From NCBI GenBank assembly GCA_002104945.1, contig MCFH01000055.1, positions 62,001 to 126,000 of the forward strand: a stretch of DNA of 64,000 nt, read 5' to 3'. The notes beneath the pieces are model-generated. The model had not been told where the DNA came from. It made no database searches and was given only the letters and a program-made list of their open reading frames with translations. Shown in pieces: positions 17,642-60,675 of the stretch. The DNA comes from Piromyces finnis finn (Eukaryota > Fungi > Neocallimastigomycota). The first letter of the stretch is position 1, and every line of letters begins with the position of its first letter. Position numbers and translations under genes: made by a program.

Positions 17642-18217
17642 CACATATAAAAAATTTATATAGTTTTTATAATTTAGTTAATAAAATTTTCACGAAAAAA
17701 ATTGTAAAAGGTTTTTATATATGTTAGTTAATAAGTTAAATATAACAAGTTAATTAAGTTAGTTATTACCTCTCTATACGAGTTAATAACTAAATAAAGT
17801 TTTATAAAAAATAATAAAAGAACTAAAATAAATATTATAACACAAAAATAAATATAATACGATAAATATTAATATGAAATATTATTTACTTAAATAATTA
17901 TTATAATTATTATCTTTTATTTATTAGTTATAATTATATACATTAATTATTATTATAGCTATTAATTTACTTTAATACTAACGCTAAAGTATTTAACGTT
18001 AGTTTTGACTATACTATTTAACTATATGAGTTTATTTTCTTTACCACTTGATTGGGTAAAGCAAATAGACTTCCTATTTAATTAATAACCATTAATATAT
18101 GGTTATGCATATATTTGGCCAATAAATGGTGACCAGAATATATGGTTTCAATTGAAATATTTGTGGGCAAACTTATGGCCACAAATATTTCTTACAATGC
18201 CCCCCTGAGGAGAAAAC

Positions 18218-18444
18218 CTAGGCAGGGTTTTGGACACTAACCATGAATTCCTGGTAGCATTTATCTTGAAATTCCTTGAGTAGCTTATCATAGTGGGAGT
18301 TCTTGTCAATGATATCAGCATCAACCCACTCTTGTCTAAAGTCACTAAAGGTAGCTAAGTATTGGTAGTTATCCTTCTTTCTTCTGGCATTCATGATTTT
18401 GATAATTTTCTGGTAGCCCACTGGTGCAGGTGTTAGTTCTTGTT
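18218..18444 (-). CDS. Chromodomain-like tail of F integrase in the -1 frame
   Basis: QELTPAPVGYQKIIKIMNARRKKDNYQYLATFSDFRQEWVDADII..LLKEFQ overlaps the pol stop. Confidence 0.7.
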
Positions 18445-21400
18445 ATGGTAGGGTTCAAGTTCACTGATATGAAACACAGGGTAGACATTGGGGAAAGGTG
18501 ACTTGCTGATATCCAACCGGTAGTTAAGCTTGCTTTCATCAATTCCAATAACCTTGAAGGGACCGTACTTTCTTGCTTGTAGCTTGTAGAAGGGAAGAGG
18601 GTTGTAATTTTCTGGTTTTCTTAACCACACCAAATCCATGAGCCTAATTTTAGGGTAGTTAAGTTCTCTTCTATGGTCCAAGTGGTCTAAGAACCGTGTT
18701 CTTGATATGTCCAGCATGTGCTTTAAGTTACCTAAGTTGTGAGCGAAGCTATCTAATATAGGAGCTTCACCAAGTGAGTGGACAAGTTCTGAGTCTTGAG
18801 GGTTCATATGTACCTGGTAGTTATACAAGGCTAGGAATGGGGACTGCTTAGTAGAACTGTGTACTGCATTATTATAGCAGAACTCAGCTAAGTACAAGTA
18901 CTTCAACCATTCGTCGTCATCAAAGGTCTTCACAAAGCATCTAAGGTACATACTTACGTAGGAGTTATTGCGTTCTACCTGACCAACTGTTTCATGATGG
19001 CCAGTAGTAGCAAGGTTTACTTCTACGCCAAAGAACCCCATAATGTCCTTCCACAACTTACTAGTGAACTGGACACCACGATCCGTAGTAACCGATTTGG
19101 GACAACCATGTAACTTGAATACATGTTGTAAGTATGCTAAGGCTGTTTCTTTAGCAGTAGGCATACTCCTAAATCCCACTAAGTGTATCATTTTGGTTAA
19201 CTTATCGCTACAAACCATGATACAACCTCTTCTAGTGACTTCTGGGGGTTCTGAGGGACTACTACCTGGTTTTCTACGTTCCTTAATAGGTAGGTCCGTC
19301 AGGAAGTCGATTTCTACTTCTTGCCAAGGTAAGTCTGCAACTTTTACCCTAGCAGCGCTACCGTACGGCTTGTGTCTGTTGTCCTTTTGGGTACAACATA
19401 TGGTACAAGCTTTAATATATCCCGCAATGTCATCCTTCATTTTTGGCCAGTAGTAGTTTCTGGCTATCAGGTCATAAGTTTTATCTTTTCCCAAATGACC
19501 TGCTGTTTCACTATCGTGGTTAAGTTTTATGATTGTTTCCCTTAACACCTTTGGTACATATGTACGTTCTGGTGCATCCTTTCTAACAATCAACCCATTA
19601 ACCATCAACCACTTCTTTTTGATGAGCTTGTGGCCTCTTTTTGCGTCAAGACCATCTCTAATTTCCCTAGCAAGCTCATCCGTGTTGTAGGCTTGTTTCA
19701 GTTCTCCCACAAAGCTTACTTCTAACACCGCATAGCACTCTTCTTCCACGGGTGGAAATTCTTTTACCTGTTCAGGTCGAAGGAGGCTAGCTTTTTCCAT
19801 CTCCAGTTGTACCTGTTCTGGAGATACCATTCTTGATAGGATATCGGCTCTACCATTCATTTTTCCTGGCCGATATATTATTTCGAAGTCGTATGCAGCA
19901 AACAGCTCTTGCCATCTTGCCTGTCTTGCTGTCAACAACTGTGGTTTTGTGGCGAACAGGAGATTCCTATGGTCACTATATACTAGGACCTTATGTTTCG
20001 CACCCATTAACAGGTGTCGCCACTCGATGAAAGCATTCCTAATAGCCAACAACTCCTTTTCCGTGATGGAGTAGTTGATTTCTGCTTTCGTAAGTTTCTT
20101 GGAATAGTAATACACAGGGTGTAGTTCATTGTCATCGCCTAGTTGTGATAATACACCACCCACTGCGTAGTTACTAGCGTCGCACTCCACTATAAACTGA
20201 CGGTCATGGTCAGGATATGCTAATACTGGTGGAGACAACAGCATTTCTTTTAACTTCTCGAACGCCTGGATGCGTTCTTCATTCCACAGGAATTGTACCT
20301 TTTTGGACGTCATCGCATATAACGGCCTTGCTATCTTAGAGAAGTCCTTTATAAACTTCCTATAATAGTTGCAGAATCCGAGGAATGACTGTAGTTCTTT
20401 AATGTTGGTTGGTTGTGGCCAACTTGCTACAGCTTTTAACTTTTCTGGGTCGGTTTTAATACCATATTTTCCAACTACATGACCCAGGAATGCAAGTTCT
20501 TCCTTGTGGAACTCACACTTCGCTAACTTAGCTACTAGACGATTATCTATTAGCTTTTGTAGGACTCTTTTTACATGCCCTACATGCTCTTCAAGTGACT
20601 TGGAGTAGATGATGATATCATCCAAGTACACTTGACAGCAGTCGTTGATTTCTTCTGCCAGCACCGTATTAATGAACCCTTGGAACGTGGCAGGAGCATT
20701 AGTCAACCCAAATGGCATCACTAGATATTCATAATGCCCAAACTTGGTTGAGAATGCCGTCTTGTATTCGTCACCTTCACGAATACGCACGAGGTTGTAG
20801 GCAGACTTCAAATCCAACTTGGAGAAGATAGTCGCGCCTTTCATAGCCTCAAACACTTGACTGATGAGTGGTAAAGGGAAGGAGTTACGTACTGTTACCT
20901 TATTAAGACGCCTATAATCAGTACATAATCGTCTTTCACCACTCTTTTTGGGCACGAATAACACAGGATAACCTGCAGGACTTTCTGACTTCCTGATGAA
21001 GCCTTTTGCCAGGTTTTCCTCTATATATTCCTTCAGTGCTTTTTCCTCTTCTGGATTGAAGGGATATATAGGCCCTTTATGAAGACTAGCATCCGGCTCC
21101 AGGTCGATCTTACAGTCGTAAGGACGGTGTTCTGGTAGCTGGTTAGCTATTTCTTCATTAAATGCTTCTTTGAAATTGTGGTAGTACTTCTCCACGATTT
21201 CTTCAGGTGTAGGTTGATTTTCGTTTAAGTTTTCTTCCTGTACCAACCCTACGTAAATGTGATTTTTCTCTAAGTTTGACTCTTGTACCAACCCTACTGA
21301 AACACAAGTTTTCTCTAAGTTGGAACTCGATGCCAACCCTCCGGAACTTCCGTTCCTGGTTCCTTTTGTAGCCTTGTGGCTACCATTACCCACGATTTCG

Positions 21401-23616
21401 GCTTCGATGTTTTCTGCGGTTACAGTTACCAGAGGCCTTCTTGCTTTTGCATTAGTAACTGTAGTTATGGGACTTAATTGAGTACAGTAGTAGATATTGC
21501 CGTCATTTACACCATAACTGTTGGTGTGTCCTTTATCCTTATCATTATCTACTACGAAGTACCTCACTTGTGCATCTTTATCATAACCTCTGTAGATAAA
21601 GTGCTCATCCATGAAGCCCAGTCCCACAATGATCATCTCCGGCATATTGTCGGATAGGTGACAACTTGTGTTGAAGCAGTATGGCTTAGCTTCTTGTTCG
21701 CCAGATGGAGTTAACCATAACTTCAACTGCAAGTCATCTGAGAACTGCTTTAACTCGATATCACCATTCACAGTTCTGAATATGGCTGGTTTGTCCACTA
21801 CCTTTAACCCGAGCTTCTTTGCTAAATTTGGGTGAATGAGGTTTGTGGTGGAACCAGTATCATACAAGACTTCTACCCTTTTTATATCTCGAGGGTTGCT
21901 TCTTGCATTTATTTCAGCTACTAGTTGGTTCTGACTGTAGTAGCTGTTATTGACCGTCGTTTGACTTGCCATAGCCTTAGGTAATGGGTTATTTCCCATA
22001 CTAGAAGGTCCTTGCTTTGGTTGGAAGCTAGAACTTCTTCTAAAGCTTGACTTATTTAAGGATTCACGACGTTCTTTGGCACCGTTATTGTTTTTTACGT
22101 AAGCCTGAGTGTTGGTCTGCTCAACTTTAGGCTTATTATTTGGCTTGTTGTTCTTCTGCTTTAACTCAGCCCATCTAGATGGTCTACATGGGTCTGTGAT
22201 ATCCAACAAGGCCATAATAGTGGTCTGGCGGTCTCTTTTGTCGTACTTTTCTATGGTTTCATTACGGAAGACTGCTTGGTGGTCATCGCACTTTAGCAAG
22301 ACTTCACTTAATGTTTCCAGCGTACGTTCCGGTTCAGGGATATCATAGAACGCTTCCCTGACAGAAGGCCTGACCTGTTGTATTAACACCTGTCTCCTAA
22401 CATTTTCAGGAAGCCCAAGTGTTTCCGTCAATTCATTGAACTCTTCCAAATAGTCGTATGCTTTTCCCCACTCATGTGTGAGCTTAAGCAACTTTGACTT
22501 GCAGAGTTCATGGGGAGACTCTGGTGGAAACTTATCTTGAAGGTGGAGGAATAGTCTTTCAGCATCGGGATTCCTACGCTGCAACATCCTCTCTCTAAGT
22601 CTATACCATCTCAATACTTTCCCACCTAGATGATCTTCAATGAAGCTAACCTTTGCCTTTTCGTCGTTACCATAGTCATATGGGTAACGTTTGAAATGAC
22701 GTAAGCACTTCTCTTGAAAACCCTCTAAGTCTATCCCATTATTATCAAACATAGGCACTTTTTCTTCATACCTATGTACTCGCCAATCGAACATCTTCAC
22801 GTCCCCATCCTCGGAATATTCCGTAGGGTTGGTGCTGCTACTAGTTCCAGCACCATGAGGATTACCCATACCACCGGTTTGATAGGATGTTCTTTCATGA
22901 GCTCTGGCTTCAGCTCTTCTGTTCATGGCTTCGACTTTAGCCTCGAACAATTTTTCTCTTTCTTCTAGAGCGTTTCGTTGCTCCCTCAATCTGGCCATCT
23001 CTTCTTCAAGCTCTTTTTTATAAGAGACAAAGGCACTAGATTGACGGTACAACGTTTCTTGGTTGTTTAGCACTTGCTGGTGGTCTTGTAACCTTTCCTC
23101 ATGTTCTGCGGTAAAGGCATTTTCCACAGCATGCAGCTCTTCCAAGCTAACTTGGCTAGCTGACTCATTTGCTTCCAACCTTTGATCCACTTCAACAAAT
23201 TTTTGCTGAAGAGCATCGTTTATCTCGCTCTTGTAAACCTCAATACCCCGAAGTTGTTCTTCCATAGCACCCAGACGGTTTCCCATACTAGCAAACTGGC
23301 TAGATATTTCCGAAACCCATCTATTAAGAAGAACTTCAATGTGTTGCATTGGGTTTACCTCACTATTATTAGTAAAAAAGAAAGAAGGATCAACAGGGGT
23401 GGGCATAGAATCCCCCTGTTGAACCTGTAAATTCTGATTAGATTCGACCTCAGTGCTTTCGAGAAGCACCGGGGTTCGAACCCGTGACATTCCCTCTACA
23501 CCATCCATGCCATCCGCGCTCGCCGCGTCAGGACGGGTCCCGTCCCTTACGAATGATGTTTTTGTGTCCAATTTATGGACACCCCGAGGGTTAGGCGACT
23601 TACCTGCGTTTTTCAT
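18433..23616 (-). CDS. gag-pol: Gag-Pol polyprotein of family F (coiled-coil gag, PR, RT, RNase H, IN), 1727 aa
   Basis: LYDTGST, YLDD, VECDAS, H..GH..C..C, TDRG, YGPF motifs. Confidence 0.96.
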   Translation of the reverse strand: MKNAGKSPNPRGVHKLDTKTSFVRDGTRPDAASADGMDGVEGMSRVRTPVLLESTEVESNQNLQVQQGDSMPTPVDPSFFFTNNSEVNPMQHIEVLLNRWVSEISSQFASMGNRLGAMEEQLRGIEVYKSEINDALQQKFVEVDQRLEANESASQVSLEELHAVENAFTAEHEERLQDHQQVLNNQETLYRQSSAFVSYKKELEEEMARLREQRNALEEREKLFEAKVEAMNRRAEARAHERTSYQTGGMGNPHGAGTSSSTNPTEYSEDGDVKMFDWRVHRYEEKVPMFDNNGIDLEGFQEKCLRHFKRYPYDYGNDEKAKVSFIEDHLGGKVLRWYRLRERMLQRRNPDAERLFLHLQDKFPPESPHELCKSKLLKLTHEWGKAYDYLEEFNELTETLGLPENVRRQVLIQQVRPSVREAFYDIPEPERTLETLSEVLLKCDDHQAVFRNETIEKYDKRDRQTTIMALLDITDPCRPSRWAELKQKNNKPNNKPKVEQTNTQAYVKNNNGAKERRESLNKSSFRRSSSFQPKQGPSSMGNNPLPKAMASQTTVNNSYYSQNQLVAEINARSNPRDIKRVEVLYDTGSTTNLIHPNLAKKLGLKVVDKPAIFRTVNGDIELKQFSDDLQLKLWLTPSGEQEAKPYCFNTSCHLSDNMPEMIIVGLGFMDEHFIYRGYDKDAQVRYFVVDNDKDKGHTNSYGVNDGNIYYCTQLSPITTVTNAKARRPLVTVTAENIEAEIVGNGSHKATKGTRNGSSGGLASSSNLEKTCVSVGLVQESNLEKNHIYVGLVQEENLNENQPTPEEIVEKYYHNFKEAFNEEIANQLPEHRPYDCKIDLEPDASLHKGPIYPFNPEEEKALKEYIEENLAKGFIRKSESPAGYPVLFVPKKSGERRLCTDYRRLNKVTVRNSFPLPLISQVFEAMKGATIFSKLDLKSAYNLVRIREGDEYKTAFSTKFGHYEYLVMPFGLTNAPATFQGFINTVLAEEINDCCQVYLDDIIIYSKSLEEHVGHVKRVLQKLIDNRLVAKLAKCEFHKEELAFLGHVVGKYGIKTDPEKLKAVASWPQPTNIKELQSFLGFCNYYRKFIKDFSKIARPLYAMTSKKVQFLWNEERIQAFEKLKEMLLSPPVLAYPDHDRQFIVECDASNYAVGGVLSQLGDDNELHPVYYYSKKLTKAEINYSITEKELLAIRNAFIEWRHLLMGAKHKVLVYSDHRNLLFATKPQLLTARQARWQELFAAYDFEIIYRPGKMNGRADILSRMVSPEQVQLEMEKASLLRPEQVKEFPPVEEECYAVLEVSFVGELKQAYNTDELAREIRDGLDAKRGHKLIKKKWLMVNGLIVRKDAPERTYVPKVLRETIIKLNHDSETAGHLGKDKTYDLIARNYYWPKMKDDIAGYIKACTICCTQKDNRHKPYGSAARVKVADLPWQEVEIDFLTDLPIKERRKPGSSPSEPPEVTRRGCIMVCSDKLTKMIHLVGFRSMPTAKETALAYLQHVFKLHGCPKSVTTDRGVQFTSKLWKDIMGFFGVEVNLATTGHHETVGQVERNNSYVSMYLRCFVKTFDDDEWLKYLYLAEFCYNNAVHSSTKQSPFLALYNYQVHMNPQDSELVHSLGEAPILDSFAHNLGNLKHMLDISRTRFLDHLDHRRELNYPKIRLMDLVWLRKPENYNPLPFYKLQARKYGPFKVIGIDESKLNYRLDISKSPFPNVYPVFHISELEPYHNKN

Positions 23617-23917: not shown

Positions 23918-24423
23918 TGTAAAAGGTTTTTATATATGTTAGTTAATAAGTTAAATATAACAAGTTAATTAAGTTAGTTATTACCTCTCTATACGAGTTA
24001 ATAACTAAATAAAGTTTTATAAAAAATAATAAAAGAACTAAAATAAATATTATAACACAAAAATAAATATAATACGATAAATATTAATATGAAATATTAT
24101 TTACTTAAATAATTATTATAATTATTATCTTTTATTTATTAGTTATAATTATATACATTAATTATTATTATAGCTATTAATTTACTTTAATACTAACGCT
24201 AAAGTATTTAACGTTAGTTTTGACTATACTATTTAACTATATGAGTTTATTTTCTTTACCACTTGATTGGGTAAAGCAAATAGACTTCCTATTTAATTAA
24301 TAACCATTAATATATGGTTATGCATATATTTGGCCAATAAATGGTGACCAGAATATATGGTTTCAATTGAAATATTTGTGGGCAAACTTATGGCCACAAA
24401 TATTTCTTACAAAAATGTGTAAA

Positions 24424-24496
24424 GCGAAGTTGGCGCAGTCGGCAGCGCGTAAGTCTCATAATCTTAAGGTCGTGAGTTCGAACCTCACACTTCGCA
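24424..24496 (+). tRNA. tRNA-Met-CAT: tRNA-Met(CAT), elongator type
   Basis: GCGAAGT/ACTTCGC stem (G1-C72); CTCATAA loop; GTTCGAACC. Confidence 0.95.
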
Positions 24497-27967: not shown

Positions 27968-28460
27968 TGTAAAAGGTTTTATATATGTTAGTTAATAAGT
28001 TAAATATAACAAGTTAATTAAGTTAGTTATTACCTCTCTATACGAGTTAATAACTAAATAAAGTTTTATAAAAAATAATAAAAGAACTAAAATAAATATT
28101 ATAACACAAAAATAAATATAATACAATAAATATTAATATGAAATATTATTTACTTAAATAATTATTATAATTATTATCTTTTATTTATTAGTTATAATTA
28201 TATACATTAATTATTATTATAGCTATTAATTTACTTTAATACTAACGCTAAAGTATTTAACGTTAGTTTTGACTATACTATTTAACTATATGAATTTATT
28301 TTCTTTACCACTTGATTGGGTAAAGCAAATAAACTTCCTATTTAATTAATAACCATTAATATATGGTTATGCATATATTTGGCCAATAAATGGTGACCAG
28401 AATATATGGTTTCAATTGAAATATTTGTGGGCAAACTTATGGCCACAAATATTTCTTACA
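27968..28460 (-). mobile_element. Family F solo LTR, 11 bp upstream of tRNA-Glu
   Basis: Near-identical to the F LTRs; TSD GATAA. Confidence 0.96.
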
Positions 28461-28471
28461 GATAAAGAGTA

Positions 28472-28543
28472 TCCGCATTGGTCCAGTGGCTAGGATTCCA
28501 CGCTTTCACCGTGGCGGCCGGGGTTCGATTCCCCGATGCGGAA
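28472..28543 (+). tRNA. tRNA-Glu-TTC: tRNA-Glu(TTC)
   Basis: TCCGCAT/ATGCGGA; CCACG-CTTTCAC-CGTGG; GGTTCGATTCC. Confidence 0.96.
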
Positions 28544-28552
28544 GTCTTTGAA

Positions 28553-28626
28553 GCTCGCGTAGCCTAATTGGATAGGGCGTCAGACTTCTAATCTGAAGAT
28601 TGCGGGTTCGAGTCCCGCCGTGAGTG
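28553..28626 (+). tRNA. tRNA-Arg-TCT: tRNA-Arg(TCT), 9 nt downstream of tRNA-Glu
   Basis: Identical to 14914-14987. Confidence 0.96.
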
Positions 28627-38430: not shown

Positions 38431-40071
38431 ATTAATCTCGCAGGAGCTCGACTTAGAGAGAGAGATTGTAAAGATATCAAACGCCTCTGTTTGATATCTT
38501 TAATGTAACTTAAGCCACAAGTATTATTGTTTAAGTTACACAAATTATATTCAGAAAAAGAAAATGAGACATAATTTATTTATTAATAATTAAAGTTTAA
38601 AACAAAATAAATTATTAATTTATTTTTAATGTTTAACAAGTAAATTAATATTCTCAATTTAAATCCCTAGTTTTAGTATTGTTTTTTTATAGAAATAGAT
38701 AAATAATAAATGATTAATATATCAATAATACATGGGCACATATTCAAATTAAATAGTACTTAATTTGAATTGCCAATTGTATTTTACTAAAAATAGTTAT
38801 AGTTTAAATATTTATTAATAATTAAGATTTTAGTGTAGATTTTAAATAATAATATATAAGAAATAAATAGTTATAATATAATATAAATGTATTTAGGAAA
38901 AATATAAATAGAAGATATTTTTCATCATTTTATCGATGTAATTGTTATTATTAAAATTCTATTATAATAAAAGATATTTTTAATAAAACAATTTTTATTT
39001 TTATTTTAAATTTAGTGTTATTGTAATAGAATAGATATCCTAATCTATTTTTTCTGTGTCGCCATTACAAAATTTAAATGAGAATAATTATTTAAATAAA
39101 CTAATATTATTAACATTAATTAATGATTAATAATTAATGATTTTAACTAAAAAATATTAATTATGTATCAAATAATTATTATTTCTTACATATTGTTAAG
39201 GAATGAACATAAATAGTTGAATTAGCTAGAATTTTAGGATTTAACCTTCAACTATTTATATTCCTTACTAGTGTTTAACTCTATTTTTAAAATATAAAAA
39301 TTATAATATATAATTTTTATACATTTTTCTAGTAATTATTAATATTTTTATTATATAGTTATATTATTTGTATATAGTTATTTAAGACCTTTATTATTAG
39401 TATTAGTATAATTACTTATAATATTTTATACTTATAAAATTTTACAAAATTTTATTATTAAAATAGTTATAGGTATTTTATTATTATTTAAGGTTTATTT
39501 TATTAATTAACTTTATTGTATAATATTTTATAATTTGAAATTATGACATAGAATTTAATTATAATTTTTACTAAAAGAGGCAACTGTTACACACAAAACA
39601 GAAGATACCTCGACAGAAAAATTATTATTTATGTCTAAAAAAGGGCATAATTAATTGAATAATATAATTTTATTATATGTCATAATTAAATATATAATAT
39701 ATGATATGCAAAAATGTTACACATATCATAAATTAAAAATTTATTAATTATAAATTAAAAATTTTTCTATTCAAATATTAAGAGATTATTCATAATATAT
39801 ATTAAGGATTTAATTAATATATGTTACAGTGAATGATCCATATATTATGAATGAAATCAATTTAAATCCTTAGCTATCCAAAACCATTAAATTTCAAATA
39901 ATGGATAGTTGGAAAAAGTACGAGGATTTTTGAGAAAAATTTTAAAAATTGAAAAATCAAAAATAAATTAAATGAATAAAAATTAAAATTAAATAAATTT
40001 TTATTTTTATAACTATTCAAGTGTTTTGTGATATCTTATTTGAACCGTAGCATTATAGATTCGTTACATTT

Positions 40072-41535: not shown

Positions 41536-41957
41536 AATAATAGAAATAACTAAATTGTTATAGTGGTTAGTAGCTAAGAATTTGAATCTGAATGTAACTA
41601 GTTCGAGACCTCATAGATACTATTTTAAAAATTATAATTTTATTTTATTTTTAAATTTTATTTTATATGAAGATTATTGATTGGCTAAGAATTTTAAGTT
41701 GAAAAAATTTTATAAATTAATTTAAAAAATTTTTAGTATAAATACGAGCGAATTTTCTCAAATATTTTAAAGAATCGAGATTTTATTAATAAATAATTAT
41801 ATTATTAAACACTAACTTATTAAGTTAAATTCTATGTGTTTTTAATGATATTTTTATAAATTAATAATTTACAGAATATTTTAAAGTGTTAAGATTACTA
41901 AGTTATTTAGTAAATATTATAACTTGTTTTTTATTAATAAAGACACATTTCTTTACA

Positions 41958-42852: not shown

Positions 42853-43953
42853 ATGGAAGAGAACGAAAACAACCACATGGATAATAATAATATTTTCGAA
42901 AACGCAACTCTTAAGGATGGTTTTTCAGGGGATCGCAGGTATCTGAAGGGTTTCTTAGCTAAGGTGGAGCTAGTGTTTATGCTATATCCTGAACGGTATC
43001 AAGACGACGCAACCAAAATTCTCTATATAATATCAAGACTTTATGGGGACGCTATGAATTGGGCTGCTACTCTTATAAACAACCATGATCCGTGTCTTAA
43101 TAACTACCAAGCTTTTGTTGACAGGTTTAAGGCTTTTTATGGATATAACGATGCTACCTATGTTGCAAATCAAATGCTTAGAACCTTAAAACAACGCCGA
43201 TTAGGAGGAATTAGAGGATATATCTTGGAATTTAACCGCTATGCTGATGAATCAAACTGGAATGAACAAGTCAAAATGGATGCATTTATAGCTGGCCTTA
43301 ATCAACAAGTTGCCGTTCGTATTTTGGAAATGTTTCCGGGTCCTAGGGATCTTCTTTCATTACAGACTATTGCTTCAAGAATCGATTCAAGATTATCTAC
43401 ACATCATACCTTTTTCCCTTCTGGTTCAAACAATGACCAAAACCGAAAGAAAAGATCTTTTCATCACTCTTCAAAAATAACAAAGTCCATTACAAACAGG
43501 AATAACCATGGCCCTATCTCAAACGAAGAAAAGGAAAGAAGAAAGAAAGAAAATCTTTGTGTGTATTGTGGTGCTTCAAGTCATAAGCTTAATAATTGTC
43601 CAAAAAGAAAGAATAAAGATCGTGAAAATCCTTCACTAATATCTATTCCCACACTTATATCCGCTCCTAAAGAAGAAAACAAAACTCATAATAAAATGAC
43701 AACTAAATTTAAACTTTCTTATGAACTAAATACGGATATTCTTATTGACTCAGGATCCAAACTTAATTTAATTGATGTAGATTACTGTAACGATAATAAC
43801 ATTCCTTATCATGATGATGGTAACCTCCCAAATATCGTTGGTATCGGTGGTCGACAATCTCTTTTTGGAATTACATCTCCTTTGAATCTTCGCTACAAAG
43901 ATCATCTCTGTCGAACACAATTCTATGTAACTGATCTACCTTATTATCCTTGT
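42853..43953 (+). pseudogene. gag: Gag-protease of family G, truncated by a J LTR
   Basis: CVYCGASSHKLNNC knuckle; LIDSGSKLNLI in the same frame. Confidence 0.9.
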
Positions 43954-44476
43954 TGTAAAGATATCAAACGCCACAGATTGATATCTTTAATGTAACTTAA
44001 GCCATAAATATCATTGTTTAAGTTACACGAATTATATTACAGAAAAAGAAAATGGGACATAATTTATTTATTAATAATTAAAGTTTAAAACAAAATAAAT
44101 TATTAGTTTATTCTTAATGTTTAACAAATAAATTAAAATTCTCAATTCAAACCCCTAGTTTTAGTATTGTTTTGTAATAGAAATAGACATCTAGTATATA
44201 ATTATTAAATGTTTAATATATCAATAATACATGGGCACATATTCAAATTGAATAGTACTTAATTTGAATTGCCAATTGTATTTTACTAAAAATAGTTATA
44301 GTTTAAATATTTATTAATAATTAAGATTTTAGTGTAGATTTTAAATAATAATATATAAGAAATAAATAGTTATAATATAATATAAATGTATTTAGGAAAA
44401 ATATAAATAGAAGATATTTTTCATCATTTTATCGATGTAATTGTTATTAATATAATTTCTATTATAATAAAAGATA
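43954..44476 (+). mobile_element. J-type LTR lacking its 3' ~110 bp, fused to the G RT
   Basis: TGTAAAGATATCAAACGCC start; joins directly to the (I)DDIIIFS coding sequence. Confidence 0.88.
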
Positions 44477-46792
44477 GATGATATTATTATTTTTTCCTCT
44501 GATTATAAATCTCATATATCTCATGTCAAAACTGTTTTGAAACACCTGAGGGATGCTGGGCTCTATGCTAAATTGGAAAAATGCGAGTTCTTTGTTTCTT
44601 TTATTGATTTCCTTGGTCATAGGATTTCTACTGATGGTATTCACATGGACCCAAATAAAGTTTCTTCTATTTTAAACTGGCCTACTCCATCTAATGTTAA
44701 AGAGGTTCAATCTTTTCTTGGTCTTGCGAACTACTACCGTCGATTTATTCCAAATTTTGCAAAGATCGCTCATCCTTTGCATAAACTTTTGAAGAAAAAT
44801 GTTAAATTTGTATGGTCTAAAGAAGCTCAAGATGCTTTCGATTCACTCAAGTCCTTATTTGTTTCTGCTCCTGTTCTTATATTTCCTAATCGTGAACTTC
44901 CATTCATAGTCGAAACTGATTCAAGTAACTTTGCCATTGGTGCTATTCTCTCGCAAGTCTCTCCAATTGATAATATGACCCATCCAGTTGCTTTCTTTTC
45001 TCGCTCTCTTACTGGTCCTGAACGTAATTATCCAATATATGATAAAGAGCTCTTAGCTATCGTTGCTGCCCTTGAAACATGGCGTCATCTACTTAAAGGC
45101 TCTTCTTCTACTTTTAAGATTTACTCGGATCATCGAAATTTACTCTATCAAAAGAAACCTGAAAAAATGTCTCAACGTCTTGTTCGCTGGGCTTTGTTTC
45201 TCTCTGAATTTAACTTTGTTATTATTTATCGTTCTGGTTCTTCTAACGGTAAGCCTGATGCTCTATCTCGTCGTCCTGATTATGCTATCAATTCGAATTC
45301 CTCTTCTGATGTTCCTTTTAATGTTCTTCGCCCTGAAAACTTTTGTGCCATTGTGACTTCTGTTTCGTCCATTAGTGATTCTTTTCTTTCCGAATATATA
45401 ATTGATGACTTTTACAATAAAATCTGTGAATATCTTGATTGTAGGAAACCTCCAATACCTCACCCTCAAATTGACAAATTTTCCTTAAGCAATAGTTTTC
45501 TCCTTTTTACTGACAGAATCTATGTTCCTCCTAATTGTCGTCTTTCAATTCTTAAACTCTGTCACGACTCTCCTTCAGCTGGTCATTTCGGAATAAAGAA
45601 AACATCTTCTCTTATTGCTAGAGACTTCTGGTGGCCTTCTATTTCTTCTGATGTTAAAGACTACGTTCGTTCTTGTGAAGTTTGTTGTCGTTCAAAAACC
45701 TTTCGTCATAAACCTTATGGTCTTCTGAATCCTCTTGATATTGCTGAGCGTCCTTGGTCATCCATTTCAATGGATTTCATTACAGATTTGCCTTCATCTT
45801 CTGGTTTCACTTGCATTCTTGTTGTTGTTGATCGTCTTACAAAAATGGTTCATCTCATTCCGTTCAAAAGTATTCCTTCCGCCGCCGAAACAGCCACAGC
45901 CTTTATTGATAATATTTTCCGTCTTCATGGCCTACCTGAATCTATTGTCTCGGATAGAGGTTCTCAATTTACCTCTAAATTCTTCCAATCCATCTGTTCC
46001 TCCCTTGGCATTGAACTTAAGTTGTCTACTCCATTTCATCATCAATCAAACGGTCAGACGGAGAGGGTGAACTCCGTTATAGAACAATATTTAAGATGTT
46101 TCTCAAATTATAAAGGTTCAAATTGGAAAAGTTTTCTTAGTCTTGCAGAATTTAGTTATAACAACGTGGTTCAAGAATCATCCAAATTTTCTCCATTCTT
46201 TTTGAATTACGGCTTTCATCCAAAATATTCACCAGTTATTCCAGACTTATCTAAAGTCCCAAGAGCAGAAGAGTTTACAAGAGATTTTAAAACTTTAATT
46301 AATACCTTAAAAGAAAATTTAAAATCTGCCATGGAAACCCAGAAGAAGCATGCTGACAAACGTAGAAAAGAAGCTCCGAATTTTAAAGTTGGTGACAAAG
46401 TTTGGCTGGATAGTTCTTTAATTATCCACAAAGGAAATAAAAAATTTAAGCCAAGAAAACTCGGCCCATACAAAATCTTGGAAAAAATATCAAATGTTAC
46501 ATTTAAATTAAGTCTCCCAAAATCTATTAAGATTCATCCAGTTATTCATGTATCCAATCTCGAGAAATATGTCGAAGATAAATTTGGAAGATCTCAACCA
46601 CCACCGCCACCTATTACCGTTGACAATGAAGAAGAATACGAAGTTGAAGAAATTCTGGATAAAAGAAGACATTACGGAAAAATACAATACCTGATTAAAT
46701 GGAAAGGGTATTCAATCAATGAAGCTTCGTGGGAGCCTGAAGAAAATCTAAATTGCAAGGGGCTACTTAAAAAATTTAATAGAAAGAAATAA
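44474..46792 (+). pseudogene. pol: Family G pol remnant (RT C-terminal half, RNase H, IN, canonical chromodomain)
   Basis: IDDIIIFS; VETDSS; SDRG; LGPY; [28 protein letters not shown]. Confidence 0.93.
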
Positions 46793-47118
46793 AAAATAGT
46801 TAAAAAATTCAAATTATATTTATTATTAATATTAAAATCATAATTATTATTATTATCAAAACTTATTAATATCATTATCAATATCAATTTTATTATTAAA
46901 CAATTTATTAATATCAAATTTATCAATATTTTATTTTTAACTTTAGTAATATTAAAAAAAAATGTATTTTATTATATTAAATGTATTTTTATAATTAAGA
47001 AAATTCACTCCTTAGTTTAGTTTATTAAAAAAGAAAAACATATATTTAAATATTAAAATTCTAGATTCGTCTGGTATCCGAATCCTGGAGGAGGACCATG
47101 TAACGAATACTAGAAATA

Positions 47119-47197
47119 ACTAAATTGTCTTAGTGGTTAGTAGCTAAGACTTTGAGTCTGAATGACACTAGTTCGAGACCTCATAGATACTATTTTT
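47119..47197 (+). promoter_or_regulatory. tRNA-like Pol III A-box/B-box cassette in the G LTR U3 (also 41549, 55591, 59169)
   Basis: TGTCTTAGTGG at 47126; AGTTCGAGACC at 47170; Gln(TTG)-like arm AAGACTTTGARTCT; T-run after. Confidence 0.7.
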
Positions 47198-47561
47198 AAA
47201 AAAAATTATAATTTTATTTTATTTTATTTTATTTTTAAATTTTATTTTATATGAAGATTATTGATTGGTTAAGAATTTTAAGTTGAAAAAATTTTATAAA
47301 TTAATTTAAAAATTTTTTAGTATAAATACGAGTGAATTTTCCCAAATATTTTAAAGAATCGAGATTTTATTAATAAATAATTATATTATTAAACACTAAC
47401 TTATTAAGTTAAATTCTATGTGTTTTTAATGATATTTTTATAAATTAATAATTTACAGAATATTTTAAAGTGTTAATATTACTAAGTTATTTAGTAAATA
47501 TTATAATTTGTTTTTATTGTTAAAGACACATTTCTTTACACAACAAAAGCTTGGTAGTTAT

Positions 47562-55071: not shown

Positions 55072-55081
55072 GACAAATAAT

Positions 55082-55579
55082 TGTAAAAGGTGTTTTTTAT
55101 AAAATTAGTTAATAAGTTATATATTTAGTTAATTAAGTTAGTTATTACCTCTATATACGAGTTAATAACTAAATAAAGTTTTATAAAAAAATAATAAAAG
55201 AACGAAAATAAATATTATAACACAAAAATAAATATAAGTATATATAAATATTATTATGAAATAAATTTACTTAAATAATTGCTTTTTAATTATATCTTTT
55301 ATTTATTTAGTATAATTATAATACATTAATTATTATTTTAGCTATTAATTTACTTTAATACTAACGCTAAAGTATTTAACGTTAGTTTTAACTATACTAT
55401 TTAACTATATTAGTTTATTTTCTTTACCACTTGATTGGGTAAAGCAAATAAACTTTCTATTTAATTAATAACCATTAATATATGGTTATACATATATCTG
55501 GCCAATAAATGGTGACCAGAATATATGGTTTCAATTGAAATATTTGTGGGCAAACTTATGGCCACAAATATTTTTTACA
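55082..55579 (-). mobile_element. Family F solo LTR (diverged), 11 bp upstream of the G-LTR tRNA-like cassette
   Basis: Collinear with the F LTR; TAAT duplicated on both sides. Confidence 0.93.
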
Positions 55580-55997
55580 TAATAGAAATAACTAAATTGT
55601 CTTAGTGGTTAGTAGCTAAGAATTTGAATCTGAATGTAACTAGTTCGAGACCTAATAGGTACTATTTTAAAAATTATAATTTTATTTTATTTTTAAATTT
55701 TATTTTATATGAAGATTATTGATTGGCTAAGAATTTTAAGTTGAAAAAATTTTATAAATTAATTTAAAAATTTTAGTATAAATACGAGTGAATTTTCCCA
55801 AATATTTTAAAAAATCGAGATTTTATTAATAAATAATTATATTATTAAACACTAACTTATTAAGTTAAATTCTATGTGTTTTTAATAATATTTTTATAAA
55901 TTAATAATTTACAGAATATTTTAAAGTGTTAATATTACTAAGTTATTTAGTAAATATTATAACTTGTTTTTTATTGTTAAAAACACATTTCTTTACA
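55580..55997 (+). mobile_element. Family G solo LTR, extreme 5' end split by the F and L insertions
   Basis: Collinear with 41536-41957 and 47099-47540. Confidence 0.92.
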
Positions 55998-59020: not shown

Positions 59021-60675
59021 CTTTATCTTAGATTTTGGAAGGTTTTAGCCAGACTTTTTAGCCAGGCAAAATGTGACCTCTGGTATAATTTTGGCCAGGC
59101 AAATGTCAACGAAACCAGAAAATCTAAGCAAAAGAATAAATTCCCTACTGTAACGAATCATAGAAATAAAGAAATTGTCTTAGTGGTTAGTAACTAAGAC
59201 TTTGGTCCGAATGTCTTGAGTTCGAGACTTCTAAATTACTTTTTTTTATTTTTATTTTAATTTTTTATTTTGATTTTTTATCAACTCGAAATTCTTTGAT
59301 TGGTTAAGAAATTTAAGTTGTAAAAAATCTTTTAGATTAATTTTAAAAATTTTTATATAAATACGAGTGGATTTTTCTAAATTTAAAAAAATTGAGTTTT
59401 TATTAATTAATAAATTATTGTTAAACACTAACCTATTAAGTTAAAATTTGTGTGTTTTTAATAATAATTTTAAATATTAATAATTAACAGTAAGATAAAA
59501 GTGTTTTATATTTACTAAGTTATTTTAGTAAATTATTATAAATTTCTTTTATTGTTAAGAACACATTTCTTTACACCTACTCATATAATCTTAAAACGAG
59601 CAAGATTAGTTCAAAAAGAATTTGAGGAAGCGTAAGCTTTCCTAATTCGTCAGGGCATGAGTAATGCCCTTGAACATATTCGCCGCTCGGGCTATATCTA
59701 TGGGAGACATTGCTTCCGGTAGGTAAAATTGGGTACTAGTCTCTAATAGTGGGGGGACAAAAGTGCATCATAAGGGTAAAAGAAAAGCATGTGCCACAAT
59801 TAAAAGGATAGATGCATCTAATTGGAGACAAAAGAAAAGCATGTGCCACAATCAAAAGGATAGATTCACTATAATGGGAGACATTTAGGTTACACAAGAT
59901 TTGATATACCTAGGTTTACATATATTAATAGAATTGGGTATGGTTACGAAAAAAGTACAGTTTATCACCCTACGTGGTGGCTTCTTTTCGTACCATACTA
60001 TAATAGAGAAGGTATCACTTCACGAAACGAACCTAGGACGTAGCCTAGTAAAGTGTAGTTGTTTCGTATTCGTTGATGTTACTTAATGCTTTTCTATATT
60101 TGTAAAATTATTTCATAACAGTATCACATGTAAGAATTTTTTAATCTAAAAAATTCTTCATGTTTATATTAGAGTCATTCTATAATACAACAGAAGAACT
60201 TTTTAATCAAAAGGTTCTCCTGTTTACTTTAGTTAAAAATATTTTCATAATGCCAAGAAATAATCTTGTGTAACCTAAATGTCACCCATAATATTATATC
60301 TCCCATTACAGTGCATCTATCCTTTTGATTATGGCACATGCTTTTCTTTTACCCTTATGATGCACTTTTGTCCCCCCACTATTAGAGACTAGTACCCAAT
60401 TTTACCTACCGGAAGCAATGTCTCCCATAGATATAGCCCGAGCGGCGAATATGTTCAAGGGCATTACTCATGCCCTGACGAATTAGGAAAGCTTACGCTT
60501 CCTCAAATTCTTTTTGAACTAATCTTGCTCGTTTTAAGATTATATGAGTAGGGAATTTATTCTTTTGCTTAGATTTTCTGGTTTCGTTGACATTTGCCTG
60601 GCCAAAATTATACCAGAGGTCACATTTTACCTGGCTAAAAAGTCTGGCTAAAACCTTCCAAAATCTAAGATAAAG
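59021..60675. mobile_element. Long inverted-repeat (foldback) element; arms 59021-59901 and 60262-60675
   Basis: ~414-bp arms are near-perfect reverse complements once the G LTR is removed; 360-bp spacer. Confidence 0.85.
59149..59575 (+). mobile_element. Diverged family G solo LTR
   Basis: TGTAACGAAT..TTCTTTACA; TSD CCTAC; the other arm lacks it. Confidence 0.93.

Follow-up and report, generated by a model that had tools for sequence, protein, structure and literature searches.

A module resembling a tRNA-type Pol III promoter in the LTR of a Piromyces finnis chromovirus and its probable use as a landing site by other LTR retrotransposons

Towards the far 5' end of its long terminal repeat (LTR), the chromovirus designated G carries a tRNA-gene-like cassette with A and B boxes, and at least eight LTR-retrotransposon families treat this cassette like a tRNA gene. 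Each of these families, which insert 10-30 nt upstream of real tRNA genes, keeps its own distance and presents to the cassette the terminus that it presents to the genes. These observations were made in the window, i.e. the whole stretch of 64,000 nucleotides analysed, in which Ty3/gypsy elements are nested about six real tRNA genes, and were extended to the complete genome (56,455,805 bases in 232 contigs, the largest of 2,625,575 bases). The explanation that best accommodates the data, and which we regard as very probable, is that a tRNA-derived type-2 Pol III module in the U3 of a chromovirus is used as a landing site by a guild of tRNA-targeting elements through a putative TFIIIC/TFIIIB tether, and is kept for the benefit of G.

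Anatomy of the cassette and of its carrier

Numbering of the cassette took the T of the A box, at 55598, as tRNA position 8 (T8), thereby placing a virtual +1 at 55591. Tested on this scale, the G LTR was found to contain, some 24 nt in from its start, a tRNA-type A box and, at canonical spacing, a B box, with 44 nt between the beginning of the A box at 55598 and that of the B box at 55642. The anatomy is that of a type-2 Pol III promoter, with TRGCNNAGTGG at approximately +8, GGTTCGANNCC at approximately +52, and a T-run thereafter. The original prediction, that such a cassette is present in all four G LTRs of the window, was borne out by reading a common block in every copy (..TTGTCTTAGTGGTTAGTA..AGTTCGAGAC..T-run, the A box coming first), and by the occurrence of TAGTGGTTAGT in four out of four, at 41561, 47131, 55603 and 59181. 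The observation of an LTR-borne tRNA-like cassette is thereby confirmed. In the copy at 59149, which belongs to a diverged subfamily (G2), the A box is the same as in G1, the B box reads GAGTTCGAGAC, and the terminal run consists of eight Ts. The T-run of G1 comprises four Ts only, a feature of little meaning in a genome so AT-rich, the intergenic G+C content being 12-20%. The coordinates of relevant features are collected in Table 1.

Table 1. Positions of the cassette, of the G and F elements and of the reference tRNA genes in the window
Feature	Position	Strand	Evidence or remark
Polyprotein ORF of full-length F	18433..23616	-	LTRs of this F terminate at 18196 and 24411
tRNA-Met, reference target	24424..24496	+	F LTR terminus ends at 24411, gap 12 nt
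tRNA-Glu/tRNA-Arg tandem pair, reference target	28472..28626	+	F terminus ends at 28460, gap 11 nt
G LTR with cassette +1 at 41549	41536..41957	+	..AAATTATATCA terminus 13 nt upstream of +1
G coding region, rearranged copy	42853..46792	+	Pfam
gag of window G	42853-43995	+	Pfam
RNase H, integrase and chromodomain of window G	44537-46792	+	Pfam
G 3' LTR, intact polypurine-tract junction (GGAGGAGGACCA joined to TGTAACGAAT)	47099..47540	+	Cassette +1 at 47119
Older LTR terminus ..AAAATTATTACA	ends 55071	+	17 nt from virtual +1 before F insertion
Displaced G LTR nucleotides GACAAATAAT (LTR positions ~4-13)	55072..55081	+	Just after the older terminus
TAAT duplication around F solo LTR	55078-55081 and 55580-55583	+	Sequence reading
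F solo LTR in G LTR, ending 11 nt before virtual +1 at 55591	55082-55579	+	TAAT flanks
G LTR, subfamily G1b, first ~10 nt moved upstream by F	55580..55997	+	3' end ..CATTTCTTTACA at 55997
tRNA-gene-like cassette	55591..55668	+	Read from the sequence
A box TGTCTTAGTGG	55598-55608	+	Sequence reading
Anticodon-arm-like stretch	~55617-55633	+	Cassette of the 55580 G LTR
B box AGTTCGAGACC, from tRNA position 52	55642-55652	+	Sequence reading
T-run TTTT	55665-55668	+	Cassette of the 55580 G LTR
G2 LTR (diverged subfamily), start intact	59149..59575	+	Cassette +1 at 59169

It had also been proposed that the acceptor and T stems of the cassette do not pair, and the results agreed that no foldable tRNA is present: ARAGORN called no tRNA in the cassette copies of the window, at 60 loci or on the contigs of related elements, the Rfam tRNA model gave no match to the cassettes even at E ≤ 10 (E ≤ 1 for those of the relatives), and the minimum-energy fold of the cassette consists of two hairpins with neither an acceptor stem nor a cloverleaf. 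An identity as a functional tRNA or a tRNA pseudogene was rejected on the basis of the negative ARAGORN and Rfam results obtained at these permissive thresholds. The possibility of a tRNA-derived SINE was rejected because 100 of 100 examined cassette cores occupied one and the same position inside the G LTR, none being free-standing.

The carrier is an autonomous Tf1-like chromovirus (Ty3/gypsy, with the chromodomain on the integrase) of ~6.1 kb, the intact LTRs of which measure ~439 nt and stand ~6.08 kb apart. Pfam models matched on G were Ty3_capsid, RVT_1, RT_RNaseH, Integrase_H2C2, rve, SH3_Tf2-1 and Chromo (E = 3e-15), and an intact copy (L062:2799-7241) contains a single gag-pol ORF of 1480 aa with the chromodomain at its end. 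Immediately after the 5' LTR, ATAAAATCTCC agrees at 10 of 11 nt with the complement of CGAGATTTTAT, which itself lies ~30 nt downstream of a TATAAATA (TATA) box within the G LTR; this arrangement suggests Tf1-like self-priming from the element's own LTR transcript, the start of which is predicted. On this layout, the cassette would occupy the 5' extremity of U3 and precede the Pol II TATA box (TATAAATA) by ~165-235 nt. A role for a cassette RNA as the primer of G reverse transcription was rejected, because the putative primer-binding site matches the LTR transcript of the element itself and not the cassette. The flanks of G copies are unrelated sequences, one being the reverse transcriptase gene of another element, and as such fit a presumed chromodomain-directed insertion into transposon-rich chromatin.

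Foreign insertions at cassettes and at tRNA genes

One invader of G within the window is F, a Ty3/gypsy element whose polyprotein comprises protease, RT, RNase H and integrase but lacks a chromodomain. The gaps originally claimed for F, 11 nt at the 55591 cassette compared with 12 nt at tRNA-Met and 11 nt at tRNA-Glu, were reproduced with the same terminus facing in each case. The orientation bias of F is alike at real tRNA genes and at cassettes, and this part of the claim stood; the part that called for correction concerns the terminus involved. As read from the only full-length F of the window, the ORF of which lies on the minus strand, the terminus that faces tRNA genes and cassettes is the 5' (U3) end of F, and F is consequently divergent from its target. 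Subtraction of F together with one copy of TAAT from the 55580 locus brings the ..ATTATTACA terminus of the older L LTR to 17 nt before 55591, exactly as foreseen for the state prior to F insertion, and the older terminus type that lies under F also occurs 15-18 nt before real tRNA-Arg genes. The gaps of 13 nt (..AAATTATATCA, copy 41549) and 14 nt (..TTATTTATCA, tRNA-Gly/tRNA-Trp) that had been ascribed to a single family A were both recovered on measurement, in the form of two termini that may not represent one family. Sequences recurrently neighbouring F termini began with ATGCCCCCCTAAGGAG..., AAATTGTCAAAAAGCG... and ATAGATTCGTTGC...; an Rfam search of these three contexts matched no family, and the ATGCCCCCCTAAGGAG context is the polypurine-tract side of F itself, as judged from the full-length F of the window.

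Genome-wide, the cassette core TAGTGGTTAGTAGCTAAGA has 104 exact occurrences, and the upstream sequence was examined for 100 of these G1 sites. Thirty-four proved to be 3' LTRs with an intact polypurine-tract junction, and a further 29 had an intact LTR start preceded by a unique flank (5' or solo LTR). A foreign LTR terminus was located 10-30 nt before the virtual +1 (with one outlier at 2 nt) at the remaining 37 sites, a number that includes duplicates on other contigs and corresponds to an estimated ~30 independent events in G1, the equivalent estimate for G2 being 5-6. Over half of the G1 copies that are not 3' LTRs are thus occupied by a foreign terminus. The G2 subfamily (the 59149 type), in which the sequence between LTR start and A box differs from that of G1, is represented by 19 sites, and five of the 14 that are not 3' LTRs were likewise occupied. 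The gaps recorded at G2 sites were 12 nt for F, 12 nt for V, 15 nt for Y, 17 nt for W (with T nested at 28 nt) and 30 nt for T, all family labels being assigned from terminal motifs of 9-19 nt, the loosest of which (T and W) could catch unrelated AT-rich ends.

A genome-wide plot of insertions near G LTRs had been expected to show a peak in front of the cassette, and such a peak was present, as indicated by the occupancies of 37/100 (G1) and 5/14 (G2). Summed over the 26-nt zone of all 119 sites, ~43 termini were observed compared with ~1.5 expected by chance, this estimate deploying eleven terminus motifs at 5e-4 per strand-nucleotide in transposon-rich sequence. A role for the G cassette as a landing pad for other transposons is therefore strongly supported. 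As regards the remaining 6 kb of G, insertions are rare on the sole basis of LTR-pair spacing, 27 of 34 LTR pairs retaining the canonical 6055-6113 nt; by comparison, the 25 nt immediately before the cassette of the 5' LTR had been invaded in 8 of the 34 full-length elements. The corresponding value for the 3' LTR cassettes of full-length elements was only 1/34 versus the 8/34 of 5' LTRs (p = 0.027). This scarcity counts against the model and calls for an extra assumption; a G+C-rich polypurine tract falling on the TFIIIB position, or interference by Pol II read-through, may be put forward by way of speculation. Natural B-box mutants exist among the G copies, and are uninformative on box dependence because the mutations may be younger than the insertions.

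Reference distances were obtained from 60 real tRNA loci, taken from the 63 scored out of ~2900 candidates in the genome, and consisting mostly of tRNA-Arg(TCT), tRNA-Thr(TGT) and tandem partners, and hence of few tRNA species. Comparison of these with the cassette distances (Table 2) upheld the proposal that the two are equal, the agreement being apparent family by family.

Table 2. Distance from the foreign LTR terminus to the first nucleotide of real tRNA genes and to the virtual +1 of G cassettes
Family	Gap at tRNA genes (nt)	Gap at cassettes (nt)
F	11-12 (n = 8, window included)	10-15
V (F in the other orientation)	12	12-13
S	12	none seen at cassettes
A	14	16 (one site; A2-type end at 13)
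U	14	14-16 (Z, with a similar terminus)
Y	14-16	12-15
X	14 (n = 1)	15-18
W	15-18	17
T	28-29	28-30

Family means at tRNA genes and at cassettes gave a Pearson coefficient of 0.98 and a Spearman coefficient of 0.81 (p = 0.016), the cassette gaps being more widely spread than the tRNA gaps (for F, 10-15 versus 11-12 nt) and the number of tRNA sites per family ranging from one to eight. The mean offset between the two classes of target was +0.75 nt, which indicates that the virtual +1 is placed correctly to within a nucleotide. Nested insertions were found to hold the register of their own family: T was located at 28-30 nt inside W or A2 remnants that themselves end at 17 or 13 nt, falling within the last 11-17 nt of the older W or A2 LTR, and a nested X at 17 nt sits inside a U/Z-like end at 13 nt. 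The 41536 copy in the window provides one such case, with a T-type terminus (..TTTATTTTACA) 30 nt upstream of +1 nested in the ..AAATTATATCA terminus. In one T insertion at a real target, the element has entered the Glu gene of a Glu-Arg pair.

Conservation of the cassette and rival explanations

The closest named relative of the G polyprotein comes from an Orpinomyces/Pecoramyces genome, and relatives with 61-70% identity were found in rumen metagenomes and in the assemblies GCA_016295205.1 and GCA_016295295.1. In every contig of a relative that reaches the LTR start, an A box lies 25-35 nt beyond TGTAACGAA and is succeeded by a B box and a T-run; in total nine lineages of the clade, sampled from rumen metagenomes and from anaerobic fungi other than the present one, retain a cassette there, with the boxes conserved and the rest diverged. 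In G-like relatives the conserved parts read TGTC(T/C)TAGTGGTTAGTA ... AGTTCGA, while the box pairs of the divergent relatives are GGTTCAGTGGTAAC ... GGGTTCGACTC, GGCTTACTCGTTAAGC ... GGGTTCAATAC and TGGCATAGTGGTTAGAGC ... GGGTTCGACTC. Three sequencing runs also contain the cassette sequence, on contigs of uncertain kind in which U3, cassette included, is joined to the polypurine-tract region and in which neither starts nor ends of transcripts are seen. When the five lineages that could be aligned were compared over their first 100 nt, invariance was found in 22 of the 29 columns of the boxes and in 15 of 62 other columns (Fisher p = 6.6e-6), in accordance with the original expectation that the boxes would be more conserved than the rest of U3. 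Such conservation suggests that selection operates in those lineages of the clade that are active, and therefore that the module probably has a function for G itself. In lineage L214 (GCA_016295205.1), the LTR is without its first four nt and a ..TTTTATCA end lies 16 nt before the virtual +1, a single case that is suggestive of landing-pad use in another genome.

The order of events can be read from the interrupted G LTRs, which are without their first 4-13 nt and in which, wherever the invader was short enough to span, the missing part was found together with a 5-bp duplication beyond the invader's far side. Duplications at reconstructed empty sites included ACTAG, AATAC, AACGA and ATCAA, with TAAT for the F insertion of the window. 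It follows from these target-site duplications that the invaders entered pre-existing G LTRs, and the proposal that G inserts beside older LTR ends was rejected on the same evidence. A reversed sequence of events in the wider sense, whereby G lands by the LTR termini of tRNA-targeting elements or both kinds accumulate at real tRNA genes, would accord with the fact that TE-rich regions in this genome are dense nests round tRNA genes. It is, however, scarcely credible when set against the displaced and duplicated LTR starts, the failure of ARAGORN to find any real tRNA within 1.5 kb at 30 G LTR loci, and the unrelated nature of the G flanks. It is also very unlikely that the invaders read the sequence or shape of the LTR start, or a nucleosome-free edge, in place of a Pol III complex, the match in distances then being coincidental. 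All insertions do fall within the initial ~20 nt of the LTR, itself a conserved segment (TGTAAYGAATACTAGAAATA), or immediately outside it, but a response to the LTR edge would not account for eight families that each maintain a register of their own at tRNA genes and cassettes alike, the values ranging between 11-12 and 28-30 nt. Nor would it account for G2, which preserves the same registers despite its different sequence between LTR start and A box, or for T-type insertions, which at 28-30 nt fall beyond the LTR, either in the polypurine tract or in the flank, and the regions upstream of real tRNA genes have no sequence in common with the G LTR start.

A different kind of challenge is posed by structure, since the A box lies within a hairpin of 7-8 bp and the B box forms the 3' strand of a second hairpin, and part of the conservation may consequently serve an RNA or DNA structure beside the polypurine tract as opposed to Pol III factors. 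Taken to its full extent, this would mean that the module is kept mainly as a cis-acting RNA/DNA structure for the replication of G, that its Pol III likeness reflects ancestry, and that any binding of factors and the attraction of other elements are incidental. The two-hairpin fold was indeed recovered in six of seven lineages, with z-scores of -1.2 to -3.5, hairpin 1 contains a compensatory pair (GTCTTAG/CTAAGAC in G1 versus GTCCTAG/CTAGGAC in L214), and every lineage has the module at a fixed position 25-35 nt past the polypurine tract. Nevertheless, we consider it unlikely that structure is the main reason, because the invariance extends to the A/B-box consensus itself and is not confined to the pairing, and lineage L217 has kept the boxes with hairpin 1 broken. 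The stems of distant lineages are moreover quite different and out of register, so that the apparent covariation is mostly hairpin propensity. Even if correct, this alternative would still leave the insertions in need of Pol III-type recognition, and it competes with the landing-site explanation solely over why G keeps the module.

Proposed mechanism and relation to known systems

Under the preferred explanation, that of a Pol III module serving as a landing site, and by analogy with Ty3 and Tj1, TFIIIC would bind the boxes of the cassette and position TFIIIB upstream, and the integrases of the invaders would be tethered to the resultant TFIIIC/TFIIIB complex. G would retain the module because it gains from it, most likely through a TFIIIC/Pol III chromatin barrier protecting the LTR promoter within the heterochromatin that the element targets, with the attraction of other elements as a by-product; such a barrier is our preferred guess as to why the module is kept. 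In yeasts, TFIIIC sites act as heterochromatin barriers, as exemplified by tDNA barriers and by ETC and COC sites. In the part of that literature drawn upon here, these are sequences with A and B boxes or a B box, situated at heterochromatin borders and acting via factor binding and not via an RNA; ETC sites usually have the B box only, whereas the G cassette has both boxes plus a T-run, and its barrier role is hypothetical. The insulator function and the short Pol III RNA (~75 nt) envisaged in the original prediction are likewise hypothetical. The more far-reaching notion, that a chromovirus clade seeking out heterochromatin bears the cassette in every LTR as a mobile and selected TFIIIC/Pol III boundary element, one that keeps the chromovirus promoter open and, as a side effect, spreads tRNA-like havens that redirect the guild across the Neocallimastigomycota, is offered tentatively and is more doubtful than not; if true, one transposon family would be reshaping the integration landscape of others throughout that phylum. 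The word 'decoy', which featured in the original prediction, imputes a purpose, and no result presented here bears out a purpose.

Both Ty3 and Tj1 use TFIIIB to integrate at the start sites of Pol III transcription, the insertion window of Tj1 being 5-11 bp upstream of the mature tRNA 5' end (PMC4600332). The present system resembles these in its narrow window, from a few to ~12 nt upstream of the tRNA, into which F fits at 11-12 nt, and in its orientation bias, and is likewise akin to them in that any Pol III-transcribed gene serves Ty3 and Tj1 as a target. It differs in that at least eight families are involved, with distinct registers that include one at 28-30 nt, and in that a large extra class of target is borne by a retrotransposon as opposed to host genes; the tether, moreover, is putative here. 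Insertions of TRE5-A on the Dictyostelium rDNA element report Pol III complexes at non-tRNA sites (PMC5391098), and the targeting of tRNA genes by DGLT-A and Skipper-2 is convergent in compact genomes (PMC5006619). Common to those cases and to the present one is the use of insertions to infer TFIIIC/TFIIIB at sequences not annotated as tRNA genes; by way of contrast, the sites are host sequences in the former, while the site described here is mobile and multiplies with its carrier.

The nearest structural parallels are Helenus, Ajax and Cassandra (TRIMp3), elements with a tRNA- or 5S-rRNA-derived segment in the LTR (Kojima 2024, PMC10886601). According to the sections of that paper used here, they share with G conserved Pol III boxes in the LTR and for the most part encode no functional RNA, and the fungal TRIMp3 members have 5-bp target duplications and a conservation of the boxes that was read as function. 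The same sections describe them as non-autonomous elements of 0.3-1.3 kb, the Pol III promoter of which is thought to drive their own transcription, and argue that the autonomous partners of such TRIMs need Pol II. G is different in being autonomous and 6.1 kb long, with its own TATA box, a predicted self-priming site, and a cassette far upstream in U3; of the features that define TRIMp3/Helenus elements, it has the tRNA-derived LTR segment with A and B boxes and is not a short element devoid of ORFs. Within the same coverage of the source, the LTR-borne Pol III modules on record are those of Cassandra, Helenus and Ajax, all of them non-autonomous TRIMs, and fungal Helenus is reported from Pucciniales and Agaricomycetes and not from anaerobic fungi, and the first part of the Results and the Discussion contain no mention of LTRs as integration targets (PMC10886601).

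A literature search found no paper on tRNA-targeting elements or on tRNA-like LTR modules in anaerobic fungi. Both kinds of phenomenon being known separately, what is new is the presence of the mimic on an autonomous chromovirus clade, combined with a guild that uses the mimic as a landing pad. LTR-borne Pol III modules are thereby extended from miniature TRIMs to a clade of full-length chromoviruses, and evidence at the level of sequence is provided for the in vivo recognition of a Pol III promoter mimic borne by an autonomous LTR retrotransposon, the organism being one with scarcely any molecular genetics. In terms of transposon ecology, one family makes integration sites for others, so adding mobile pads to the fixed set of tRNA genes, and the question is raised of whether TFIIIC sites can serve transposons as portable chromatin barriers. 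On a practical level, the cassettes and the nests of insertions before them will confuse the annotation of tRNA genes and transposons in the genomes of anaerobic fungi.

Occupancy and integrity of G element cassettes

Genome-wide comparison of the two LTRs of 34 paired full-length G1 elements demonstrated that the cassettes of the 5' LTRs were occupied in eight cases and those of the 3' LTRs in only one (Fisher p = 0.027), the sole 3' LTR case being a T-type insertion located within the polypurine tract. The window's own G copy is rearranged or nested, because the distance from cassette to cassette is 5570 nt rather than the usual ~6083 nt; a repeat belonging to another LTR family is present within this element (see table).

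Coordinates of cassette-bearing LTR starts, repeats and an LTR terminus
Feature	Location	Strand	Context
Cassette-bearing LTR start	L214:630-720	minus	Anaerobic-fungus assembly GCA_016295205.1 contig
Cassette-bearing LTR start	L214:825-916	plus	Anaerobic-fungus assembly GCA_016295205.1 contig
~490-nt repeat, other LTR family	window 38466-38958 and 43953-44457		Inside the window's G element
T-type LTR terminus	L148 (G000:C184:47358-47546)		Within tRNA-Glu half of Glu-Arg pair, 28 nt before tRNA-Arg

Priming and transcript ends of G

In the intact G copy of locus L062, ATAAAATCTCC, situated just after the 5' LTR (L062:1908-1918), is complementary to CGAGATTTTAT, which lies in the LTR ~30 nt after TATAAATA and close to the predicted transcript start. 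From this complementarity, G seems to self-prime in the manner of Tf1. Depth in run X1 drops more than tenfold immediately after the stop codon of the G ORF, and in a single contig of run X3 L062:7416 is followed by a stretch of A, ~135 nt before the 3' LTR; provided that both runs are RNA, many transcripts of G may stop short of the LTR.

Tandem tRNA pairs as insertion sites

The tRNA genes often occur as tandem pairs (window 28472-28626; L129, L131, L133, L137, L154, L157; L159-L180), with spacers of 9-10 nt in the Glu(TTC)-Arg(TCT) pairs and 6-8 nt in the Gly(TCC)-Thr(TGT) pairs. At locus L148 the T-type insertion destroyed the upstream gene, and the position of its terminus relative to the tRNA-Arg therefore indicates that integration can be directed by whichever gene of a pair lies downstream. 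Three further Glu-Arg pairs (L134, L135, L136) share a deletion of the A-box/D-arm part of tRNA-Glu (..ccgcattggtccagtacacgc..), and are probably copies of a single decayed locus.

Departures from the family insertion distances, and other LTR starts

The single family with the terminus ..AAATTATATCA showed no agreement between its two kinds of target, with a gap of 22 nt to copies of tRNA-Arg (window 14914; L130, L138, L158) as against one of 13 nt to the G cassette at 41549. An outlying X-type terminus was recorded just 2 nt before the virtual +1 at a contig end (L067, G000:C1:67), compared with gaps of 15-18 nt for the other X-type hits at cassettes. The G2 LTR at L201 (G000:C195:271713-271963) starts only from CATAGAAATA, and the ..GAGCTATTAATCGGATTTC directly before it, which fits none of the terminus motifs used in the survey, may represent either a further invading family or a deletion. 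The two tabulated LTR starts of L214, which belong to different lineages and run in opposite directions, are ~100 nt apart.
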